NCBI RefSeq assembly: GCF_040938485.1
Contig: NW_027271231.1
Span: forward strand, 1,488,001 to 1,552,000
Origin: Diadema antillarum
Taxonomy: Eukaryota
Direction of reading: 5' to 3'
Length of the DNA stretch: 64,000 nt
Shown: positions 661-50,945 of the stretch, one piece after another
How positions within the stretch are numbered: position 1 is the first letter of the stretch
Layout: each line of letters begins with the position of its first letter
Translations under genes and position numbers: made by a program
The notes under the pieces: generated by a model
Seen by the model: only the letters and a program-made list of their open reading frames with translations
Told to the model about the DNA's origin: nothing
Database searches by the model: none

Positions 661-3600
661 TCAGATGAAATTCCACCAGTTGTCGATGCCGACCACGTCG
701 ACGAGCTCGTTGGGATCCAGGTCTTCCTGCTCGTCCTCGGTATCAGCGATGCCTTCGAAGAGGCGGTTGCCGCATTGCCCGCCGCCGCGGAAGTGGCTGT
801 ACGGGTCAGAGCGGGGCAGTACCGCATAGCAGAGCCAGCAGAAGTAGCAGTGACATTTTGTGCACGTCATTTTGTTGCAGCCGTCGTATTTCTGCCGAAA
901 TGAGAAGATGAAATTGTACACATGAAAAAGGCAACTATGCTTCCTACCCCTGCTCACTTTTATGTACGTACACACTCAAACAAGAACCAATCAACATGTA
1001 GGTTTCATTTTAATGGGTCAGTTTTGTATGTTTTGCCGTCTATTTTCATCACGGCTACTACTAAATCACTAAATAATTTGTGTTTATTTACGTCAATGAA
1101 GAGTAATCTGTCGATCAGTTGCAATTTGGCTTGTTTTCCACCAACTCATGACAGACCCTAATGACAAGCAGCTTTCAAGATACAGCTGTATCACACACCA
1201 CTTGTATACACATTGAAAATACTGCAGTGCATCAACATCATGGACAAAGTAAAGCTTTCAGAAAGCCGATCCACTGAGACCAAACATGTTCATTATTTCA
1301 CCCTACTGTTCAATGCCTAATAAGCAATCGGGTTCATCAAACATCAGTGTTTGTCCATAGTCACAGACACACACACTGGCGTAGCCAGGGGGGGGCGATG
1401 GGGGCGGTCGCCCCCCCCTAAGATTTGGACCGGGGATTTGGGAGGCGGAAAAAAAAAATGCGTGTATACTGTATGCATGCACATGAAGCGGGTCTCCTTT
1501 GCAACCTTTCATCAAATAAGATATTTTTTTTGAATATTTCACTCAAAGTGTGCACCAGATCGTTGAATTTCAATTCAAAATATGCAAAATCTCTCGTGCT
1601 TGGGAGGGGGTATCCCCCTCCCAAACCCTCCCCCTCTGTGCCTCTTTCCCTAGCTTAGTACACTTTTTAGATTTACAAAAAAATTATGAATAATTCTGAG
1701 TGCACAAGACTTATCACATACCTTCCAAAAACTCAAGGTTCCCTCATGTATAAGGGGAATTTCCCCTTTTAATCGACCCTTTCCTCCCTCAGTCCCCTCC
1801 CCCCATCAGTTTTTTTTTTTTTTTTTGATTTCCCAAATGTTGATTCCATCAAATATGCGTATACGAGATATCTCAATTTCAACCTTAAAAAGGCAAAAGC
1901 TCCATCGGAAGGGAAAGGTGGAGATAACACTCGCCCACGCCTTCTCCCTGCTCACCCGCCCCTCCACCCCCCCCCCTTCCGCCATGCATATAAGTAGACT
2001 GTGGCTATACCCAGATCGCTTTATTTCAATTCTAAAAACGCAAAAGCTCCGCGAGCGGGAGGCGGAATTCCCCTTCCCCTAAGCTCTACCTCACTAGACT
2101 TTATACACTGACACACAGATGGTGCACATTCGGAATAAGAGCTAAATTCCGTGATTTTAACACTTCGATGAAAAAGTATTGCACCAAAAATTTGCACCAG
2201 ATCGCTGAATTTCAGGTCTGAAAACGCAAAATCCCCTTCGTGTGGGAGGGGATATGCCCCTATCTCATACAACCTCGTGTGCATGCTTTTTCTGTTTGAT
2301 TGCTGAACAGACAGCGTTCATGATATTCAGTGTAAGAATTAATACAAGAAGTGTATTTAAATATAGGCAAATTGTTCAATAATAATCTACACTAAAATAT
2401 ACTGCAACCTCAAACAAGTGGGACTGCTTCAACTCGTTAAAACACGCAAAAACATGCATCAAATTGCACCATTTTGCAACATCAATATGCAAAAAGTTCT
2501 CACCGTGGGAGGGGGGACACCAACCTCCCACACCCTCCCCCTCCCCCTTCGCTCGCTCCGCTCGCTCGGGTTCAGTCGCTTTCATGATATTCAGTGAAAA
2601 GAATTCATACAAGAAGATTATTAAAAAATGATACCATTTCATATGCAAATTGTTCAATAATAATCTACATCAAAATATACTGCTACCTTACACTAATGTT
2701 ACTGTTTCACGTCGATAAAACGCGCAAAAACATGCATCAAACTGCATCATTTGCAACATCAAAATGCAAAAAGTTCTCACCGTGGGAGGGGGGACACCCC
2801 CTCCCACACCCTCCCCTCTCCCTTCGCTCGCTCCGCTTGCTCGGGTTCAGTCGCGTTCATGATATTCAGTGAAAAGAATTAATACAAGAAGTGTATTTAA
2901 ATCATACCATATTATAGGCAAATTGTTCAATGATAATCTACATCAAAATATACTGCTGCCTTACACTAATGTTACTGTTTCACGTCGATAAAACGCGCAA
3001 AAACATGCATCAAATTGCACCATTGCAACATCAAAATGCAAAAAGTTCTCACCGTGGGAGGGGGTACACCCCCTCCCACACCCTCCCCCTCCCCCTTCGC
3101 TCGCTCCGCTCGCTCGGGTTCAGTCGCGTTCATGATATTCAGTGAAAAGAATTAATACAAGAAGATTATTCAAATTGATACCATTTTATATGCAAATTGT
3201 TCAATAATAATCTACATCAAAATATACTGCTACCTTACACTAATGTTACTGTTTCACGTCGATAAAACTCGCAAAAACATGCATCAAATTGCATCATTTG
3301 CAACATCAAAATGCAAAAAGTTCTCACCGTGGGAGGGGGGACACCCCCTCCCACACCCTCCCCTCTCCCTTCGCTCGCTCCGCTTGCTCGGGTTCAGTCG
3401 CGTTCATGATATTCAGTGAAAAGAATTAATACAAGAAGTGTATTTAAATCATACCATATTATAGGCAAATTGTTCAATGATAATCTACATCAAAATATAC
3501 TGCAACCTTAAACAAGTGGGACTGTTTCAACTCGTTAAAACACGCAAAAACATTAATCAAGTTGCACCATTTGCAACATCAAAATGCAAAAAGTTCTCAC

Positions 3601-6600
3601 CGTGGGAGGGGGTACACCCCCTCCCACACCCTCCCCCTCCTCCTTCGCTCGCTCCGCTCGCTCGGGTTCAGTCGCGTTCATGATATTCAGTGAAAAGAAT
3701 TAATACAAGAAGATTATTTTAATGATACCATTTTATAGGCAAATTGTTCAATAATAATCTACATCAAAATATACTGCTACCTTACACTAATGTTACTGTT
3801 TCACGTCGATAAAACGCGCAAAAACATGCATCAAATTGCATCATTTGCAACATCAAAATGCAAAAAGTTCTCACCGTGGGAGGGGGGGACACCCCCTCCC
3901 ACACCCTCCCCTCCCCCCTCGCTCGCTCCGCTTGCTCGGGTTCAGTCGCGTTCATGATATTCAGTGAAAAGAATTAATACAAGAAGTGTATTTAAATTAT
4001 ACCATTTTATAGGCAAATTGTTCAATAATAATCTACATCAAAATAAACTGCTACCTCAAACAAGTGGGACTGTTTCACGTCGATAAAACGCGCAAAAGCA
4101 TGCATCAAATTGCACCATTTACAACATCAAAATGCAAACAGTTCTTACCGTGGGAGGGGGGACACCCCCCTCCCACACCCTCCCCCCCTCGCTCGCTCCG
4201 CTCGCTCGGGCTCGGTCACTTCGCTCTCTCGCAGACTAACCGCCCCCCCTAAGATGAAATCCTGGCTACGCCGTCGGACACACACATCTTCATATGCCCT
4301 CATAAGGAAGGACTGAACTTTATTTCCTACCTACCTCATTCAGCATAACACGTACAGCAAAGGTGTATCAATAGTCAGTTTGCATTTTCTGGCATTATTC
4401 TCACTTGGGAGATATTAACAGTACACAAACACACAGAAAACTCACACACACAAACACATATATGAATACACATGTATGAATAGTGTGTGAAGGGAGGATA
4501 AAGACCAACATACCTGGATGGCGCAGGAGCACTGGGGGCAGTACTTGCTGTGCTTGCGGATCCATTCCTCACTGTTGCAGTCGTCGATGACCTGCCGTAG
4601 TGTCCGCTTGCCGAACTTCTGCTCAAGGATGGACTTCTCTTCTGACGATGCATTCTCATACTCGTCCTTTAACTTCCGGTACTCCTCTGATAAAAACAAA
4701 CCAACAAACCAACATCCAAATTGAGGGTGAGGATAGTATCGGACGCTTCAAAAACATTTTTTGCATGCCAACTTTTAATCAAAACCTGCATTACAAGGAC
4801 CAGTGAAAGAGAAGGCCAAAGATGTGGCTCAAGTCGTCTTCAATTGTAATATGAAGTCTCTGTATCCATGTTGAACTCCACAGCATATTGCTCACTGCAA
4901 ATTGTCGTTAACACTGCATGAACGTGCAGCTGCTACAGGAGTTTAGGCTTAGATCAGTGCTTCCAAATTTGGAAAGGTAGTGAAATACAACTGTTACATT
5001 GGTGACACTTTTCCATATACTGATGTTTTTTTACTGTCATACATTCTTGTTCTTCAAACTTTCAGATCAAATGATATCCTCAGTGGAAAATGAAAAATGA
5101 CAGACATTCCCATGAATATACTGTAAAACATGATATATTCGCGGCATGAAATTTTCACGCATTGGAGCCGACAGCCATTTTCGTGGCATGAAATTTTTCG
5201 CGAATTGCCACTGGCGTTCAATGCATGTAGTGTAGACAAAAACTTTCATGTGCATTTTAATTTCGCGAATTTTGGTGCTCGCAAAATTCGCGAAATTCAA
5301 ATGCACGCGAAACTTCCTCGTTTCACAGTACCCTTCCATGCAGTTTGAAGTTTCCACACAAATGTCACTTTCTGAACATAGAATTGTGAAAATATCACCT
5401 TGTCGAATTTTCACAAATTTCGCATGCCACTTAAATATTACAAAAATAATGCACAAATATATTTTTGAGTCATGAATTCATCTATTCACACAAATATCCT
5501 TATCAGCAGAATTGTCACTACATGCTGTCACTGATATCGGCATAGTGAAAAAAAAAAAATTGCTTGTATGAAAGCTTCTCAATTTATGGTACAGGACAAG
5601 GCTTAGCTTTGTGCAAGAGAGCTGGTTTCTCTTGGGCACCTAACTTCCACATGCTCGCTAGAAACACATGTACATCTCCCACAAGTGTGAGAGACTGATT
5701 TCTGGATTGAAAACAACATAAATATGCTCTCTGGATAGTAAAACCAGATATTGCAAGATACCTGATATAACAAAGTCATATTGCAGGTCCCACTTGTTTT
5801 ATATCCTTCTGATTTTGTTTTTGTTTTTGTTTTTCCCTGATATAATGAGGTACTTGACATAATGTGGAAATTTCAGTGGGTGCAAGCAGCTTGTTATATA
5901 GAGCAGGGCTTGATAGTAACTTTTTTCTCTGGTGGCCCCTTCCAGCATCTAAAATCTTTAAATTTGAAAGTTTGGTGGCCCTAAATAATAGGAAATATAA
6001 AGAATTCATTTTGAGTTTTAGCTGCCCAATCTGGCCACCCACAAGATAACCTTTTTTTAATATTTAGTGCCCAATCATCAATTTCAGTGACCCTACGCCA
6101 CCATGTCACCCGTAATGTTGAGCCCTGTATAGAGGTTTCCCTGTACCATAACTGGCCACAAGTTAATGCACGAAGTGAAGCAAAATACAGCTGCTTGTAG
6201 TCAGTCGAACTTGTTTCATGCCTGTGACTCACCGTGACTGATTTTGCAAGGGGCCAACCCATGGAAGGTGTTCTTACACAGGATGCAGAAGGCAAAGCGG
6301 CACTGGGGGCACAAACCCATGTTGGTCTTCTCGTCACGGATCACCGGACACTGACACGCCTTCCTCGGACAGAAGACGATGTCGCCCATCTCGCTCAGGG
6401 ACAGGTCCAGCAGGCGTGCATCGTACTTCTCAAAGACTTCGCGATCGACAAGTTCCTTGACCTGTGGTCAAGAGATATTACAGTAATGATTGATGAAATT
6501 CTGTTATCACTAAAGTCAAGACCAGAAACACTCTGAATATATCCAAAACTTCAACTTTAAATTTAACATAATACCTACGGGAATATGGAATATCATGTAC

Positions 6601-45600: not shown

Positions 45601-48209
45601 CTAGTGCTTAGTATGTCACTGATGTACATGAGTCATGACTCTTCTCACAAAGTTTTTGCACACCTCTGTAATCCACAAGTCTACATAATTCAGAACAAGT
45701 GAAATTCCGCATCAAAACCTGGTGTCGCTTGTATGCACAGTCCACCAACAATCAAAATGTTCTCATCCACTGTACAGCTCAATACTTACCCTCCTCCTCC
45801 GTGAAGACTTTATCCTTCTTTTTCAGATAGCGGAGCAGCTCCCCATTCTGGCAGTACTCTAGCACAAGGTAGACGTAATTGCTATTTTCAAAGTAGCTGT
45901 AGAGCTGCCACATAAAGGGAAAGGAAAAGGTGATTTAAATTTGGTCATGTAATACTATAGGAATTAAATGACTGTCACCCAAGTGAGCGGTGCACATAAT
46001 TTGTGAAGCACTTTTTTGGTTCTAAATAGATTAGAGTATTTATAAACAAATTATCATGACCTGAACCACAAACAGACTGAAACAAACTGAAATGTAATAA
46101 TTCATAATGTAAGCTTTTCACAAGAAGATGGCCTTCAGAAGCAGTTGTGAAAAAAAAGTACAAAAAGACATTTGATAAGAAACTAAACATGTCTATAAAT
46201 ATGGATCAACAAAGTTGGCACACATATCAATGGTTGGGAATTGGAGACTGTTACCAAGTCCAGACACAACTGCAGAACTCAAATCAGTAATATGATACAT
46301 CATTAGAACTGTAAGATTGAGTACAGGCAAAAGGTATAAACTACAGGTGAATAGGATTACCAGGTTATAGAACTCTGTGATGTTTCTGGAGAACTGAATC
46401 TGGCTCATTCAATGCCTGTCCAAGACATGCTTGCTTTTTATGCGTGTGTGTACACACATGCTGATTATGACATAAAATAGACTTCCCACTTCAACAACCT
46501 TGATTTAATGATGAATATTTGACAATAATCAATCAATGTCAAACAGCAGAATTACCTCAAGAATGGAAGGGTGCTTTAGCTGGCAATGAATCTCAACCTC
46601 ATTCTTGACTCTGGTCACCATCCCACGTGAATGCATGAGCTTCTTATCAATCTAAAATAACAAACATAGGAAAAAGAAGTGTGTGATTCTTATATTTCCA
46701 TGAATATTTATCAAAGCCAGTATAAAATAAAGATCAATCAAATTCTGAGTACAATAAAAAAAATATCAAATTTACATCTAATCTAATATAAGCTCTACTA
46801 CACATTTCCATTGCAGTTGGGAGCCTTAACTTACAATATTTCCAGTGTTTTTCAGTACAAAACAAAATGAGAACAGGGACCTGTTGCATAAAAGTTACTA
46901 TTGTGGTAACTTTGCCATCCAATAGTAACTACCATGGTAGCAATACTCAACTGTTAATTAAAATCAAGAATTCCATAGAAGTTACCATTGGATGGCAAAG
47001 TTACCATAATAGTAACTTTTATGCAATGGGCCCCAGAAAAATTTCTCTAAGGATTACAAAGTTACTGACTTCCTGTTCTAACTAAAAATACCTATACTAC
47101 ATGTATCCTTAACATACAGTATCTTGGGTACAGTAATAGAGAAAAATTTCCTCGTTAAAACAAATAAAAAGTGCTTTTCCCAAGCTTTTCCCACAGGTAT
47201 GAATTCTTTTGAGAATGGATATAATATGAAGTTATTACATTTCCTATTCCAAATTGTCTGAACTGCAGGGCAAAAAAAACAACAAACTAAAAAACAAAGC
47301 GAGCAAAGCAGTCAAGATTTTGTTCTGCACAGCCTAATGTAAAAACTCATGGTCATAATTGCGCCATTCCAAGTCACTGGATCTGTTAGTACACTGTACG
47401 TTACGATGTCTCGTCATCTAATAGTTTTACAAATTAGTACTAGGAGACTAGTTAACACAACATGCACATCATAATGATCCTGGAACAACTACAATTACCA
47501 GCACTCTGTAAAATTATACAGTTCTCATGTCTAATGAACAAACTTTCCTTCCCTCGCGCTCTGTCTTACCATCTTTATTGCCACCTCCTGACCTGTGCTG
47601 ATAATCTTTGCCCTGTAGACACATGCAAATCCACCCCTACCAAGGAGGTTCAGCACTTGGTAATTCTGTGGACACAAAATATTTTTAGACCACAGTCATC
47701 AGTTGTTGCCATGGAAAAGGTAAATTGTCATCAGTCTTGTTGGCTGACTTCTTGTATTCTTAGATTTAATTGTCTGTTCATAACTACTGGGTAGTTGCTT
47801 AAGAAACACACAGCCAAAAGCGGAACATTGAACTGGTTAAACTATCCTGGTAGTAATACTGCAAATTTCAATTGACATTGACAATTGACAAGGTAATACA
47901 GTGGATAATTATTGTCTTCTGTACACACCATTGCAATAGGGAAGGGAAAACCGAACATCCAAATGTATTTTTCTCTTCTCCAAAGAGTTCATATTCTATG
48001 AAATGACAAATAATGTGACCCACAAGTTATCTCAACAAACAAAACATATAAAATATATTCTAAATGCATTTGATTTAGGGTCTAGGCCATACTGTGGTAT
48101 TTTTATTTAAAGAAAAAATCTTAAATCCCAAGAGCACTTGCAAAGAGTGCATCAAATACACATATATACAGATAATGTGCACAAATCTCACCTTAATGGT
48201 ATCCTCCAT
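29691..48209 (-). CDS. PLK4: Polo-like kinase 4 (SAK), 17 coding exons, 1076 aa
   Basis: Exons (minus): 48209-48192, 47665-47570, 46651-46556, 45904-45790, 45281-45169, 43776-43561, 42922-42749, 41036-40652, 39947-39121, 37187-37083, 36570-36312, 35507-35374, 34704-34613, 32372-32086, 31683-31577, 30866-30760, 29790-29691. All are GT-AG and phase-consistent (3231 nt). Kinase: [53 protein letters not shown]. Degron DSGMAT. Cryptic polo box: [44 protein letters not shown]3: [15 protein letters not shown]. Confidence 0.96.
30378..30735. mobile_element. Kolobok-like MITE
   Basis: TTAA|AGGGGAAGGCTAGTAACTGATCAGTGGGAATCAG ... CTGATTCCCACTGATCAGTTACTAGCCTTCCCCT|TTAA. The 34-bp TIR is perfect and continues with mismatches. 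Confidence 0.8.
31200..31416. mobile_element. TA-TSD MITE (5121 family)
   Basis: TA|CTGTACAACC...GGTTTTACAG|TA, with family-type interior (CATGAAACTTTTGCG, CACAAAATTCAC). Confidence 0.55.
32668..34195. mobile_element. TA-TSD MITE (~480 bp) split by a nested Helentron-type insertion
   Basis: Perfect 23-bp TIRs CTGTAAAAGTGGTTTCTTTCGCG (32668-32690) and CGCGAAAGAAACCACTTTTACAG (34173-34195), each flanked by TA. Confidence 0.75.
33030..34076 (+). mobile_element. Non-autonomous Helentron (HINE/DINE-1/pearl-like) element
   Basis: Subterminal inverted repeat ATACCCCCGCC (33057-33067) / GGCGGGGGTAT (34063-34073). Five ~161-bp core repeats, a (GACC/GCCC) tetranucleotide array at about 33912-34027, and a 3' stem-loop TATACCCCC...GGGGGTATA. 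Inserted in an A-run. Confidence 0.8.
36021..36160. repeat. (CAT/CAC)n microsatellite
   Basis: Directly visible trinucleotide array in a PLK4 intron. Confidence 0.9.
37460..37644. mobile_element. pogo/Tigger-like MITE
   Basis: CAGTGGACTCCTATTATAAC...GTTATAATGGGAGAGCACTG|TA with internal TTGTTATAA repeats. A related degenerate copy lies at about 8705-8855. Confidence 0.55.
38272..39038. mobile_element. piggyBac-like non-autonomous element
   Basis: TTAA|CCCTAACTTACC ... GGTAAGTTAGAG|TTAA (12-bp TIR, 1 mismatch). It appears inserted at the TTAA end of an older Kolobok-like repeat (about 38130-38267, ending CTTGTCCT). Confidence 0.7.
41484..42242. mobile_element. Non-autonomous DNA transposon with 4-bp ATAT TSD (Sola1-like)
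   Basis: ATAT|ATGACCCGCTACAACAAAAAGGTCCTAAAGTCG ... CGACTTTAGGATCATTTTGTTGTAGCGGGTCAC|ATAT. The superfamily is inferred only from the AWWT TSD. Confidence 0.6.
42617..42663. repeat. (AC)n microsatellite
   Basis: Directly visible. Confidence 0.9.
44021..45126 (+). mobile_element. Second-family non-autonomous Helentron (HINE/pearl-like) element
   Basis: Subterminal inverted repeat TGTCCCCGCCG (44059-44069) / CGGCGGGGACA (45113-45123). Six core repeats (4 x ~158 bp, then 2 x 148 bp), an (ACGG)n/(AC)n microsatellite at about 45024-45075, and a 3' stem-loop GTCCCC...GGGGAC. Confidence 0.8.
45339..45549. mobile_element. TA-TSD MITE (5121 family)
   Basis: TA|CTGTAAAACC...GGTTTTACGG|TA. Confidence 0.65.
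46877..47033. mobile_element. PIF/Harbinger-like palindromic MITE
   Basis: Long inverted arms TTGCATAAAAGTTACTATTGTGGTAACTTTGCCATCCAAT and their reverse complement; 3-bp TSD CAG (46874-46876, 47034-47036). Confidence 0.7.
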
Positions 48210-50242
48210 CGTATCATGTGAAGACCTAGGAAGTACATCAATATCCTACATCATTGGGAAGCAAAGTAGAGCACATTACTGGTAAAAAGCAGGTATTTGT
48301 GAGCAATGAACTGGAGTGATATTGATAATAATATAAATTAGGTTTCTCATGGTTTCTAGACTTCTAGTAGATCTATTGAGTAGTAGCAGATTTAGATCCA
48401 TAAAGGCATAGATGGCAGTGTGGTGGTAATGTACGCTAGACAGAAAGGTCTGTCTGTCCAGAGGAGTCTTTTATCTATTTTTTAATGTTATTGCTCTCCT
48501 CCGTAGAAAGATGGAAGGCTGTCCCATACCTCACTGTATTGAAGCTCTCAACGACTGTAATTCATATCCCGAGATCGGCAAATTTAAACTTGTATAGCAA
48601 AATTAACATTTCAAGAATGCATTGAATTCACCAAGTGATTGAAATATCCAAGATTTGGGTGAAATTTTTATGGAAAAAGACACAACTACCAGCCCATCAT
48701 ACGGTCGTACATGTATCAGCTCTTCAATCATACGAATTGCGTCAGCCAATCAAATGTGATGTACGTACTTGTTTTAAATGGCAACTTACAGCCAGCAGAC
48801 GGCGATGTTGCGATATGCACACAAATTTCTGCTATGTAACGAGTTACTGTGAGTATTTTGATTGCACAACGTGAGAAAGTTACCCCAAATATTAATGCAA
48901 ATGTGTCAAGTCATGTCAAACTTGTTTGAACGTCATTTGGGTTTATGGTAACATTTGGTCTGTGCGTGACCGTAGAGCATCAATACAGGAGCCAGTAGGA
49001 TAGCCTTCGGTCTGTATAGGAGAGGATTCCGTGAAGCTAAACGCAGTCTCCGCGGAACATATCCCCGACAACCAGATACACTATACAGACTAATCTTTCT
49101 GTCAAGTGCTGATCTGGATCTGGATCTGGATGAATACGCTGAAAAACTCTGGATAGAGTATCACTCAGCACTCAGTGGTACGCATTATGCGTACTTCAGC
49201 AATTGCGCAATTCAGTGTGGTAACCCTACTACATATCGACCGCCCTTATTCATTGAAACCGACCGCGTAGTATTGGCGCACAGAACGCTTAGTACGCACT
49301 TAACTGCGCGCAGAGCACATAAAAATGGATTGCCTTTGACTGTTGATAAGGATGTGTGGGAAAACGAGACGCGGAAATTCACTGTTCATTGATGGTTTGA
49401 ATCAAGGACAAAATTTCGAATGAATATTTTAACCGAATCATAATGTAATGTCATGGAAGTTTCTAAAAAGCTTCGTACAACATGGTGTTCAATACAAGCA
49501 ACTCGGTTTGTGTGCATTGTCAATGAAAAAAGAGCAGTTGATCTAAATAAGGAGCGGCACTGCGGGGAGCTGAGCAGAGGCCACACAAGTTCGACGGCTA
49601 TATCTTTGCACTGAAACTTCGAATTGAAAAGGGAACAACAGCATGCAGCATTTGAAAGTGCTGGATTTTCTCAATCACGTAGAGTTACTAGAGGTCAAGT
49701 TTTTACGTGAATTTCAGTGTTAAATATTCTTATCAAGCAAATACACATTAGGTGGTCGATGAGTAGTAGTAGGTCCAACCTATTACCATGCAATACAACT
49801 TCTACAAGTACACTAACGTTACAATACAATTAATAAACGTTACAAGGAATATCATTCAAATCAAACAAAAGCTAATTCAACACGAGATCTACACTGCCAA
49901 CATTATAAACAGTTCATTCCGTAGAATCTACTTACAAACGAACTAAGCAGAATAGAAGCCTAAGAAGGAATACTGGTGCCATTATTTTGCCCATCGCTTG
50001 TATCAGGCCATATTGATATGGCATGAATGAGGTTGATGAAAACTTTTTGGAGAGCCTGCACCTGTATACCTACAATACACACAAGTAAACGTGTGGGACA
50101 CAGGCGGCGATAAATCGTAACGTTCAAAATTGGTAGTCATTTTCTTCCGCATGTTCTACCTTATATAAGAACCTAGCCCAGTTGGCGACATGCATGAAGT
50201 TTATGCATGCATAAAACTTGTCATATAATATCAACTTACCAT
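48192..50242 (-). promoter_or_regulatory. PLK4 spliced 5' leader: exon ending at 50240, 25-nt exon 48554-48530 and 34-nt exon 48225-48192, carrying two upstream ORFs
   Basis: Consensus splice sites: aaaATG|gtaagt at 50240, ttacag|...gag|gtatgg, and cttcctag|...aag|gtgaga. Upstream ATGs at 50242 and 48217 are out of frame with the kinase ATG at 48209. Confidence 0.6.
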
Positions 50243-50360
50243 TTTAAGTGCGAGTCAATTCAATCTGAAATAAGTTGTTTATGTTACGCAGACGGCTCAG
50301 CTTTTGAATATGGCGGTGATGAATCGATGTCATTACATTACTCCAAGAGAGGGCGCTAGA
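50240..50360 (-). promoter_or_regulatory. Probable PLK4 core promoter
   Basis: CpG-enriched region upstream of the first donor. YY1-type CCGCCATATT (minus, about 50307-50316) abuts a CHR-like TTTGAA (plus, 50303-50308). A CTCF-like CCAAGAGAGGGCGCT lies at about 50343-50357. Motifs are short and could be chance matches. Confidence 0.4.
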
Positions 50361-50767
50361 CGATTTTCTTTTTCTTTCTCTCTTTCTTTTATTATTTTAT
50401 GTCTTTCCCGTAGTCTGAAAGCCATATACAACGATACAGAATGATTAAATGAGAAGTGAGATCAAGATCAATCTTCCTGGGGTGGTGTCTCTTCACAGTA
50501 TCTGCGAATTTCTGCGTAGGTTCTACAGCATTTCAAATGAATGCTAAGCATTTCTCTGCCGTTGATGTTCCATGCTCGAGCCGCTCTTCCATAGAGTTAT
50601 GGATCGAAGTAGTGGCTATTTCAGAGGAAATGTTGAAATCCGGTATGGGAACCTGATGATAGGCCCTTATCTGAACAAATCGTTCCATTTTTTTTTTTTT
50701 TGTGAATATTTATTGTTATCATTTATCTATGTATTCATTTATTGAGCTATTTATTCATTAATCTAGT

Positions 50768-50945
50768 NNNNNNNNNNNNNNNNNNNNNNNNNNNNNNNNN
50801 NNNNNNNNNNNNNNNNNNNNNNNNNNNNNNNNNNNNNNNNNNNNNNNNNNNNNNNNNNNNNNNNNNNNNNNNNNNNNNNNNNNNNNNNNNNNNNNNNNNN
50901 NNNNNNNNNNNNNNNNNNNNNNNNNNNNNNNNNNNNNNNNNNNNN
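50768..50945. other. Assembly gap (178 N)
   Basis: Run of N. Confidence 1.

Follow-up and report, generated by a model that had tools for sequence, protein, structure and literature searches.

The locus analysed here raises the question of how the 5' end of the gene for PLK4 is built in the sea urchin Diadema antillarum, and whether its leader carries upstream open reading frames (uORFs) that could hold down the output of this dosage-sensitive kinase. The amount of PLK4 sets the number of centrioles, and an excess of the kinase leads to centriole amplification. In this study, a stretch of 64,000 nucleotides (nt) of contig NW_027271231.1 (assembly GCF_040938485.1, positions 1,488,001 to 1,552,000), hereafter the window, was investigated, and all positions below are counted from its first letter unless another contig is named. 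A first-pass annotation, made from the letters of this DNA, had drawn a PLK4 leader in which short spliced pieces assemble two uORFs, the first of them depending on whether a 25-nt micro-exon is included or skipped, a layout suggested to be tunable by splicing. We observed that the PLK4 of this Diadema probably does carry small uORFs ahead of its start codon, as in vertebrates, and that their layout is best read differently: the start exon would begin at 48278, its leader would hold five upstream ATGs (uATGs), and the 25-nt piece, a fragment of a dispersed repeat, would be no part of it. This reading as a whole is given a probability of about 0.55.

The proposed start exon of PLK4 and its upstream reading frames

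The gene is PLK4, as it had been called on the first pass, and its domains and the N-termini of its orthologs agree on this. An exon-by-exon Pfam scan returned Pkinase (2.5e-20), Plk4_PB2 (8.6e-17) and Plk4_PB1 (2.5e-14), that is, an N-terminal kinase domain with the Plk4-specific cryptic polo boxes PB1 and PB2 behind it, and the nearest proteins were the PLK4 of sea urchins. Identity was set exon by exon in this way, the short leader pieces being joined solely for reading frames. The protein begins with MEDTIE.. in Diadema setosum and with MEDRIE.. in Strongylocentrotus purpuratus, and since MEDTIK and the following 19 residues of the window match both, the start codon at 48209, already chosen on the first pass, is right. 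The annotated gene range of D. setosum covers the coding sequence alone and is without untranslated-region information, and identity between the window and the D. setosum locus is 78-87% in noncoding DNA. Around the start codon the following features were read, those of the leader with the proposed exon boundary in mind.

47570 to 47665, minus strand: second coding exon, where the kinase domain starts (Pfam Pkinase positions 1-31; 74% identity to S. purpuratus DNA).
48192 to 48278, minus strand: proposed start exon, with acceptor AG at 48280-48279, a 69-nt leader part, six codons (MEDTIK) and donor GT at 48191-48190, placed by homology among urchins.
48207 to 48209, minus strand: start codon of PLK4, acgATGg, in strong context, placed by the orthologous N-termini.
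48215 to 48217, minus strand: uATG at -8, cacATGa (weak context), opening a 13-codon out-of-frame ORF that overlaps the PLK4 start and ends on TGA 47652-47650 in the next exon.
48236 to 48238, minus strand: uATG at -29, ttgATGt, in the frame of the -8 ATG, opening a 20-codon ORF across the PLK4 start, as read from the frame.
48246 to 48254, minus strand: ATGATGTAG, two ATGs (-45 and -42) in the PLK4 frame, followed at once by TAG; D. setosum keeps one of the two.
48238 to 48276, minus strand: uORF1 at -67, 12 codons and TGA (MCSTLLPNDVGY), its ATG lying 2 nt inside the proposed exon.

For the start exon, 48278 is the probable first position, rather than 48225, where it had been placed on the first pass. 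Going upstream from the PLK4 ATG, three camarodont urchins (S. purpuratus, Lytechinus variegatus and L. pictus) lose similarity sharply at a common acceptor of the polypyrimidine-CAG type, 73-82 nt before that ATG, so the start exon is an internal exon with a sizeable leader. When the five urchins (these three and the two Diadema) were aligned with MAFFT, the CCAG of Diadema fell at most 1-2 columns from the camarodont acceptor, and the ATG 2-3 nt inside the exon formed a fully conserved column. The pyrimidine content of the tract is 65% at the 48279 acceptor, the best among the candidates. On the other side of the exon the donor reads GTGAGA, the following exon runs from 47665, and the intron directly after the I-E/K codon is common to sea stars and one crinoid, so that the start exon is ancient. 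Placing the acceptor at 48279 brings in a conserved uORF that had been missed, and it also alters the reading of the ATG that ends the candidate first exon, described in the next section.

That uORF is the first of a crowded leader, as five ATGs fall in the 69-nt leader part of the proposed start exon where 1.2-1.6 would be expected (Poisson P about 0.02). The two ATGs in the leader of about 120 nt drawn earlier are what base composition predicts (P(ATG) of 0.018 per position, about 2 expected). If the inferred acceptors are correct, a uATG stands 2-3 nt inside the start exon in all five of the urchins. In D. setosum uORF1 again has 12 codons, with one residue different. The camarodont uORF begins 3 nt inside the exon and has 18-21 codons, with a frame-keeping 9-nt insertion or deletion (indel) and a common stop 13 nt ahead of the PLK4 ATG; its peptide is MTPKMNCLTGTSSSEKLY in S. 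purpuratus and MTSTMSCLSETC(M/T)GCISEKLY in Lytechinus. Given the same acceptors, the proximal uORF therefore keeps its position across species and keeps its peptide poorly. The context of its ATG has a purine at -3 in the camarodonts (aatATGa, gagATGa); in Diadema the -3 base is supplied by the upstream exon, being G if that exon ends at 50240, and the +4 base is T.

Downstream of uORF1, the reading frames run into each other and into the gene. The stop of uORF1 (TGA 48240-48238) overlaps the -29 ATG as TGATG, and the ORF from this ATG is shut before the start codon by a 15-nt insertion in D. setosum, so the overlap from -29 is not conserved. The -8 uATG had been reported on the first pass, with AG 48227-48226 ahead of it and the 13-codon ORF behind it, and these letters are correct; as to its conservation, which had been put forward as a check, the ATG is retained in D. 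setosum and in the second haplotype of D. antillarum and is absent in S. purpuratus and Lytechinus. From the ATGs at 48238 and 48217, the window has a second uORF that reads across the start codon of PLK4 in another frame. The mRNA contains uORF1 solely if the exon starts at 48278, and the -8 ATG shares an exon with the start codon under every splice model that we considered. An N-terminal extension of PLK4, the alternative that had been left standing, is excluded for the start exon because TAG 48248-48246 and TAA 48278-48276 lie in frame.

Outside the urchins, an out-of-frame ATG at this -8 distance occurs in Asterias, and uATG counts in the sea stars and the crinoid are at chance level. It can be said that conservation of the uORFs is reasonable within the echinoids and suggestive only beyond them.

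The upstream block and competing leaders

With an acceptor at its head, the start exon must be preceded by a non-coding exon. The best candidate for it is a block about 2 kb further upstream on the same strand, with the following parts.

50240 to 50320, minus strand: 3' part of a candidate non-coding first exon, with ATG 50242-50240 as its last letters, followed by donor GTAAGT at 50239-50234.
50321 to 50365, minus strand: conserved flank, possibly core promoter, with GCGCCCTCT and CCGCCAT motifs (93% identity to the paralog block; well conserved in D. setosum).

As the first exon of PLK4, this block has roughly an even chance. D. setosum retains it almost unchanged, the ATG and the GTAAGT behind it included, and a paralogous block lies about 21 kb away on the same strand. 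The two blocks are 100% identical over the 80 nt leading to the ATG, against about 80% otherwise, and identity falls to 0.68-0.75 right past the donor; over the whole duplicated segment (52908-50103) the mean is about 84% over aligned bases. D. setosum lacks two further ATGs, at 50338 and 50333, through deletion, and these are hence not conserved. Joined to 48278, the terminal ATG would read ATG-TAA. The letters quoted for this end of the block on the first pass are all present, and so is the TAA at 50246-50244 in the kinase frame of the model then drawn; what stands of the claim is a conserved element, and its role as first exon is plausible rather than proven.

The block was also considered as a small RNA gene, and this was rejected, with no Rfam family and no significant fold on either strand. 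As RNA (50231-50365, minus strand) it is less stable than 198 of 200 dinucleotide shuffles (z = +2.0), and such an unusually unstructured piece might suit a scanning leader. Likenesses of promoter motifs to sea star and crinoid leaders (CCGCCATATTCAAA; TTTTGAACGTTACGA vs sea-star TTTTGACRACGTTCGAA) were rejected as no better than shuffled sequence (P 0.2-0.96). Additionally, no part of the Diadema leader aligns to the 10 kb upstream region in S. purpuratus, and footprinting between S. purpuratus and Lytechinus for the camarodont first exon gave AT-rich blocks alone, with no donor signature.

Several points weigh against the favoured reading. Outside the acceptor and the ATG, the alignment of the Diadema and camarodont leaders is short and weak, with a peptide similarity of a few residues, and the acceptor at 48226 is also usable and could be real or alternative. 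A closed uORF of at least 8 codons occurs in only 15-26% of random noncoding windows of the same length at the urchin loci, a rate that favours the reading, and in 23-45% at the sea star and crinoid loci, but the thresholds behind these rates were picked after the data had been seen. Stretches of at least 95% identity are common between the two Diadema species even in introns and repeats, as footprinting revealed, and because identity is high throughout, conservation between them cannot separate exon from intron. A search for RNA runs listed none, protein word searches of several lengths found no echinoid transcript contigs with PLK4 N-terminal fragments, and all splice junctions, the transcription start and any effect on translation are inferred here, the splicing from the comparison of DNA. 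With regard to the upstream block, its paralog copy is absent from the other haplotype (a 542-nt indel) and so is dispensable there, and the perfect identity may reflect gene conversion, not selection. Finally, a rival PLK4 start site could lie just past the proposed first exon, where a TATA-like palindrome is followed by TTTGAA.

The palindrome, a perfect one, CTTATATAAG (50169-50160, minus strand), and the TTTGAA (50128-50123, resembling a cell-cycle homology region) about 35 nt further on are inside the presumed first intron. The similarity of this stretch to a motif conserved in sea stars is not significant.

Among the competing leaders, the one that survives best, still an unlikely one, denies the block its place as first exon of PLK4 and takes it for a regulatory element, or an exon of another transcript, tied to the tandem TIMP-like genes, with PLK4 starting elsewhere, for instance at the TATA-like palindrome with its TTTGAA, or further upstream. 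The duplicated segment that contains the block covers at least 2.8 kb and includes the 5' end of the neighbouring TIMP-like gene, which weakens the case for exon 1; the paralog copy, besides being missing from one haplotype, has no PLK4 start exon nearby; the stretch with the palindrome and TTTGAA is 90-97% identical in the paralog and at least 95% in D. setosum; and no similarity to other echinoderm leaders was found. What this account has to accommodate is a perfect, conserved G/GTAAGT on the PLK4 strand, placed exactly where paralog identity collapses. On the opposite strand the best donor (GCG/GTGATG) is weak, and the three copies disagree on it at +5/+6; the gene next in line on the strand of the GTAAGT is PLK4, whose start exon needs an upstream partner. 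Should the block not be exon 1, its terminal ATG would be irrelevant to PLK4 translation, and the uORFs of the start exon would still stand.

Rather improbable is a second arrangement, in which the block is spliced directly to the acceptor at 48226, so that 48278-48226 is intronic and the leader carries a junction uORF, MVFT-stop, together with the 13-codon uORF from -8. The acceptor itself, CTTCCTAG with the cut before G, is usable, with a pyrimidine tract of 55%, and MVFT-stop is indeed what the letters give when 50240 is joined to 48225, as had been read on the first pass; its TGA and the next ATG share letters (ATGA). D. setosum would keep the junction uORF as MIFT-stop or as ATG-TGA, depending on the AG used. 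It is exactly at this acceptor, however, that the 15-nt insertion of D. setosum falls, and the camarodont leaders of 73-82 nt, with a uATG 3 nt inside, fit an exon starting at 48278 and not one starting at 48225. On these grounds the boundary first proposed at 48226 is probably wrong, and the start exon from 48278 is retained in what follows.

Repeats, neighbours and outgroups

The presumed first intron between 50240 and 48278 holds two dispersed repeats, in one of which the 25-nt piece is located.

49214 to 49780, strand not assigned: a member of dispersed repeat family 1, of which this genome has at least 40 copies at 82-87% identity.
48435 to 49106, strand not assigned: copy of dispersed repeat family 2, found by genome search and holding the piece once called a micro-exon.
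48530 to 48554, minus strand: the 25-nt piece first taken for a micro-exon, judged non-exonic, an internal segment of the repeat.

The copy of family 1 is present at the collinear place in D. setosum. For family 2, the 40 that were scored of 2560 first-look candidates gave 94 matches at 65-92% identity, many of them spanning most of the interval. When eight other copies were aligned, the 25 nt and both flanking dinucleotides proved to be an ordinary internal segment of the family, and the same AG..GT arrangement occurs in four copies elsewhere in the genome and in the D. setosum ortholog. The piece had been read correctly, as it lies at 48554-48530 between AG and GT and gives MSLRASIQ-stop (TGA 48533-48531) when included. 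This TGA arose in the present lineage by CpG decay from GCGAG to GTGAG, and no stop is found in D. setosum or in the repeat family. Compared with D. setosum, the 25 nt show 4 differences, equal to the surroundings and without excess conservation, and an indel of about 46-48 nt adjoins the acceptor, whose tract is 45% pyrimidine and fails a lenient splice-site filter. The same filter is passed by ten other AG..GT pairs in the same 1961 nt, and 4 of these also close the ORF from the terminal ATG.

Repeat fragments do get exonised in animals, and the letters of the spliced chain from 50240 through 48554-48530 to 48225, with MSLRASIQ-stop, the 13-codon uORF and skipping as a tuning switch, all fit, down to an AG and a GT shared with D. 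setosum; nevertheless, a cassette exon made of a generic repeat fragment with an unconstrained sequence, a weak acceptor tract, a stop private to one lineage and ten better pairs by chance around it is hardly credible, and we rejected it. Comparison with the repeat copies and with D. setosum revealed no functional, constrained splice sites in the piece, and the idea of a system tunable by splicing has no basis yet, as no splicing was observed. A micro-exon built by eye from AG..GT pairs thus looked convincing and proved to be a repeat fragment. The 25-nt piece shares with known exonised transposon fragments and micro-exons its place inside a repeat copy and the flanking AG and GT; they differ from it in having transcript support and usually strengthened splice sites, where the piece has a weakened acceptor region and no constraint.

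Another repeat, of about 125 nt and dispersed in dozens of copies at 74-86% identity, lies at 50604-50479, just upstream of the exon 1 block. The segment duplicated around that block (at least 2.8 kb, 52908-50103) recurs in tandem about 21 kb off on the same contig (C343:1559331-1562460), at 74-83% identity per segment, and consists of the 5' end of the TIMP-like gene and about 2 kb upstream of it; in view of this tandem duplication, the TIMP-like genes form a local family. At about 52035 it holds a palindromic GCGCATGCGC (NRF1-like) in a stretch conserved in the paralog and in D. setosum. The assembly (1.75 Gb, 2963 contigs) evidently contains both haplotypes here. The second haplotype (C4:2171500-2176500) differs from C343 by about 8-9% over the paralogous block, in addition to the 542-nt presence/absence, and the two are 97-100% identical at the PLK4 leader. 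In D. setosum (locus positions 1620-6536), about 4.9 kb of extra DNA separate the TIMP-like gene from PLK4, and the matching place in the window lies close to the run of N at 50767-50945.

With regard to the sea stars, Patiria miniata and Asterias rubens have in common a 17-nt motif, GTTTTGAC(A/G)ACGTTCGAA, upstream of PLK4, about 145-190 nt before MGESIE, and both begin a short out-of-frame uORF at an ATG with the same surroundings, acaATGc. In the annotation, the sea star PLK4 proteins start at non-conserved in-frame ATGs upstream of the conserved MGESIE, and these N-termini may be too long.

PLK4 uORFs in vertebrates and probable uORFs in urchins

Control of PLK4 by uORFs, which had been invoked on the first pass, is documented in vertebrates as translational repression by two uORFs in a comparable arrangement (Phan et al. 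2022, Genes Dev; PMC9296005). In that system initiation takes place mainly at uORF1, of 30 codons, uORF2, of 74 codons, overlaps the start, and removal of both uORFs raises reporter output about 9.5-fold (PMC9296005). In vertebrates the action of these uORFs as a brake is proven, and mice that lose them are depleted of primordial germ cells. Our literature search found no paper combining PLK4, uORF and sea urchin, the sole paper in the searched library devoted to PLK4 uORFs being the vertebrate one, and the present locus is likely a new invertebrate case of this known theme.

By analogy with vertebrate PLK4, the urchin uORFs would damp translation of the gene. Most scanning ribosomes would start at uORF1, and their release, 31 nt before the PLK4 ATG in Diadema and 13 nt before it in camarodonts, would be too near for efficient re-initiation. 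The weak overlapping ATGs at 48238 and 48217 may divert further ribosomes, which would be lost to PLK4, and the strong-context PLK4 ATG would be reached by leaky scanning past all the uATGs, so that output of the kinase stays low. If this is true, the positionally conserved urchin uORF would suggest that the brake predates the vertebrates or arose repeatedly. A broader proposal, that damping of PLK4 by a short uORF is an ancient deuterostome feature which Diadema elaborates with a splice-assembled ATG-TAA before the uORF and a TGATG feeding the start-overlapping ORF, is speculative and, on our estimate, doubtful. Sea urchin embryos are a handy test system for such questions, since injection of mRNA and counting of centrioles are routine in them.

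Elements consisting of an AUG directly followed by a stop are known from leaders, and the ATG-TAA at the 50240/48278 junction, with the ATG of uORF1 2 nt on, is comparable to them; this likeness hangs wholly on a junction that is unobserved.

The closest comparison remains with vertebrate PLK4 (PMC9296005). The vertebrate case was established by ribosome profiling, reporters and knockout mice, whereas the urchin case is known from DNA comparison alone. The uORFs are also of different length, 30 and 74 codons in human against 12 and 13-20 codons in Diadema. The gene is the same, the layout is similar on paper, and in both groups the short 5'-proximal uORF keeps its position and has a poorly conserved peptide. 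The second uORF, which overlaps the start, is the less conserved one on either side, being restricted to mammals within the vertebrates and to Diadema within the urchins.

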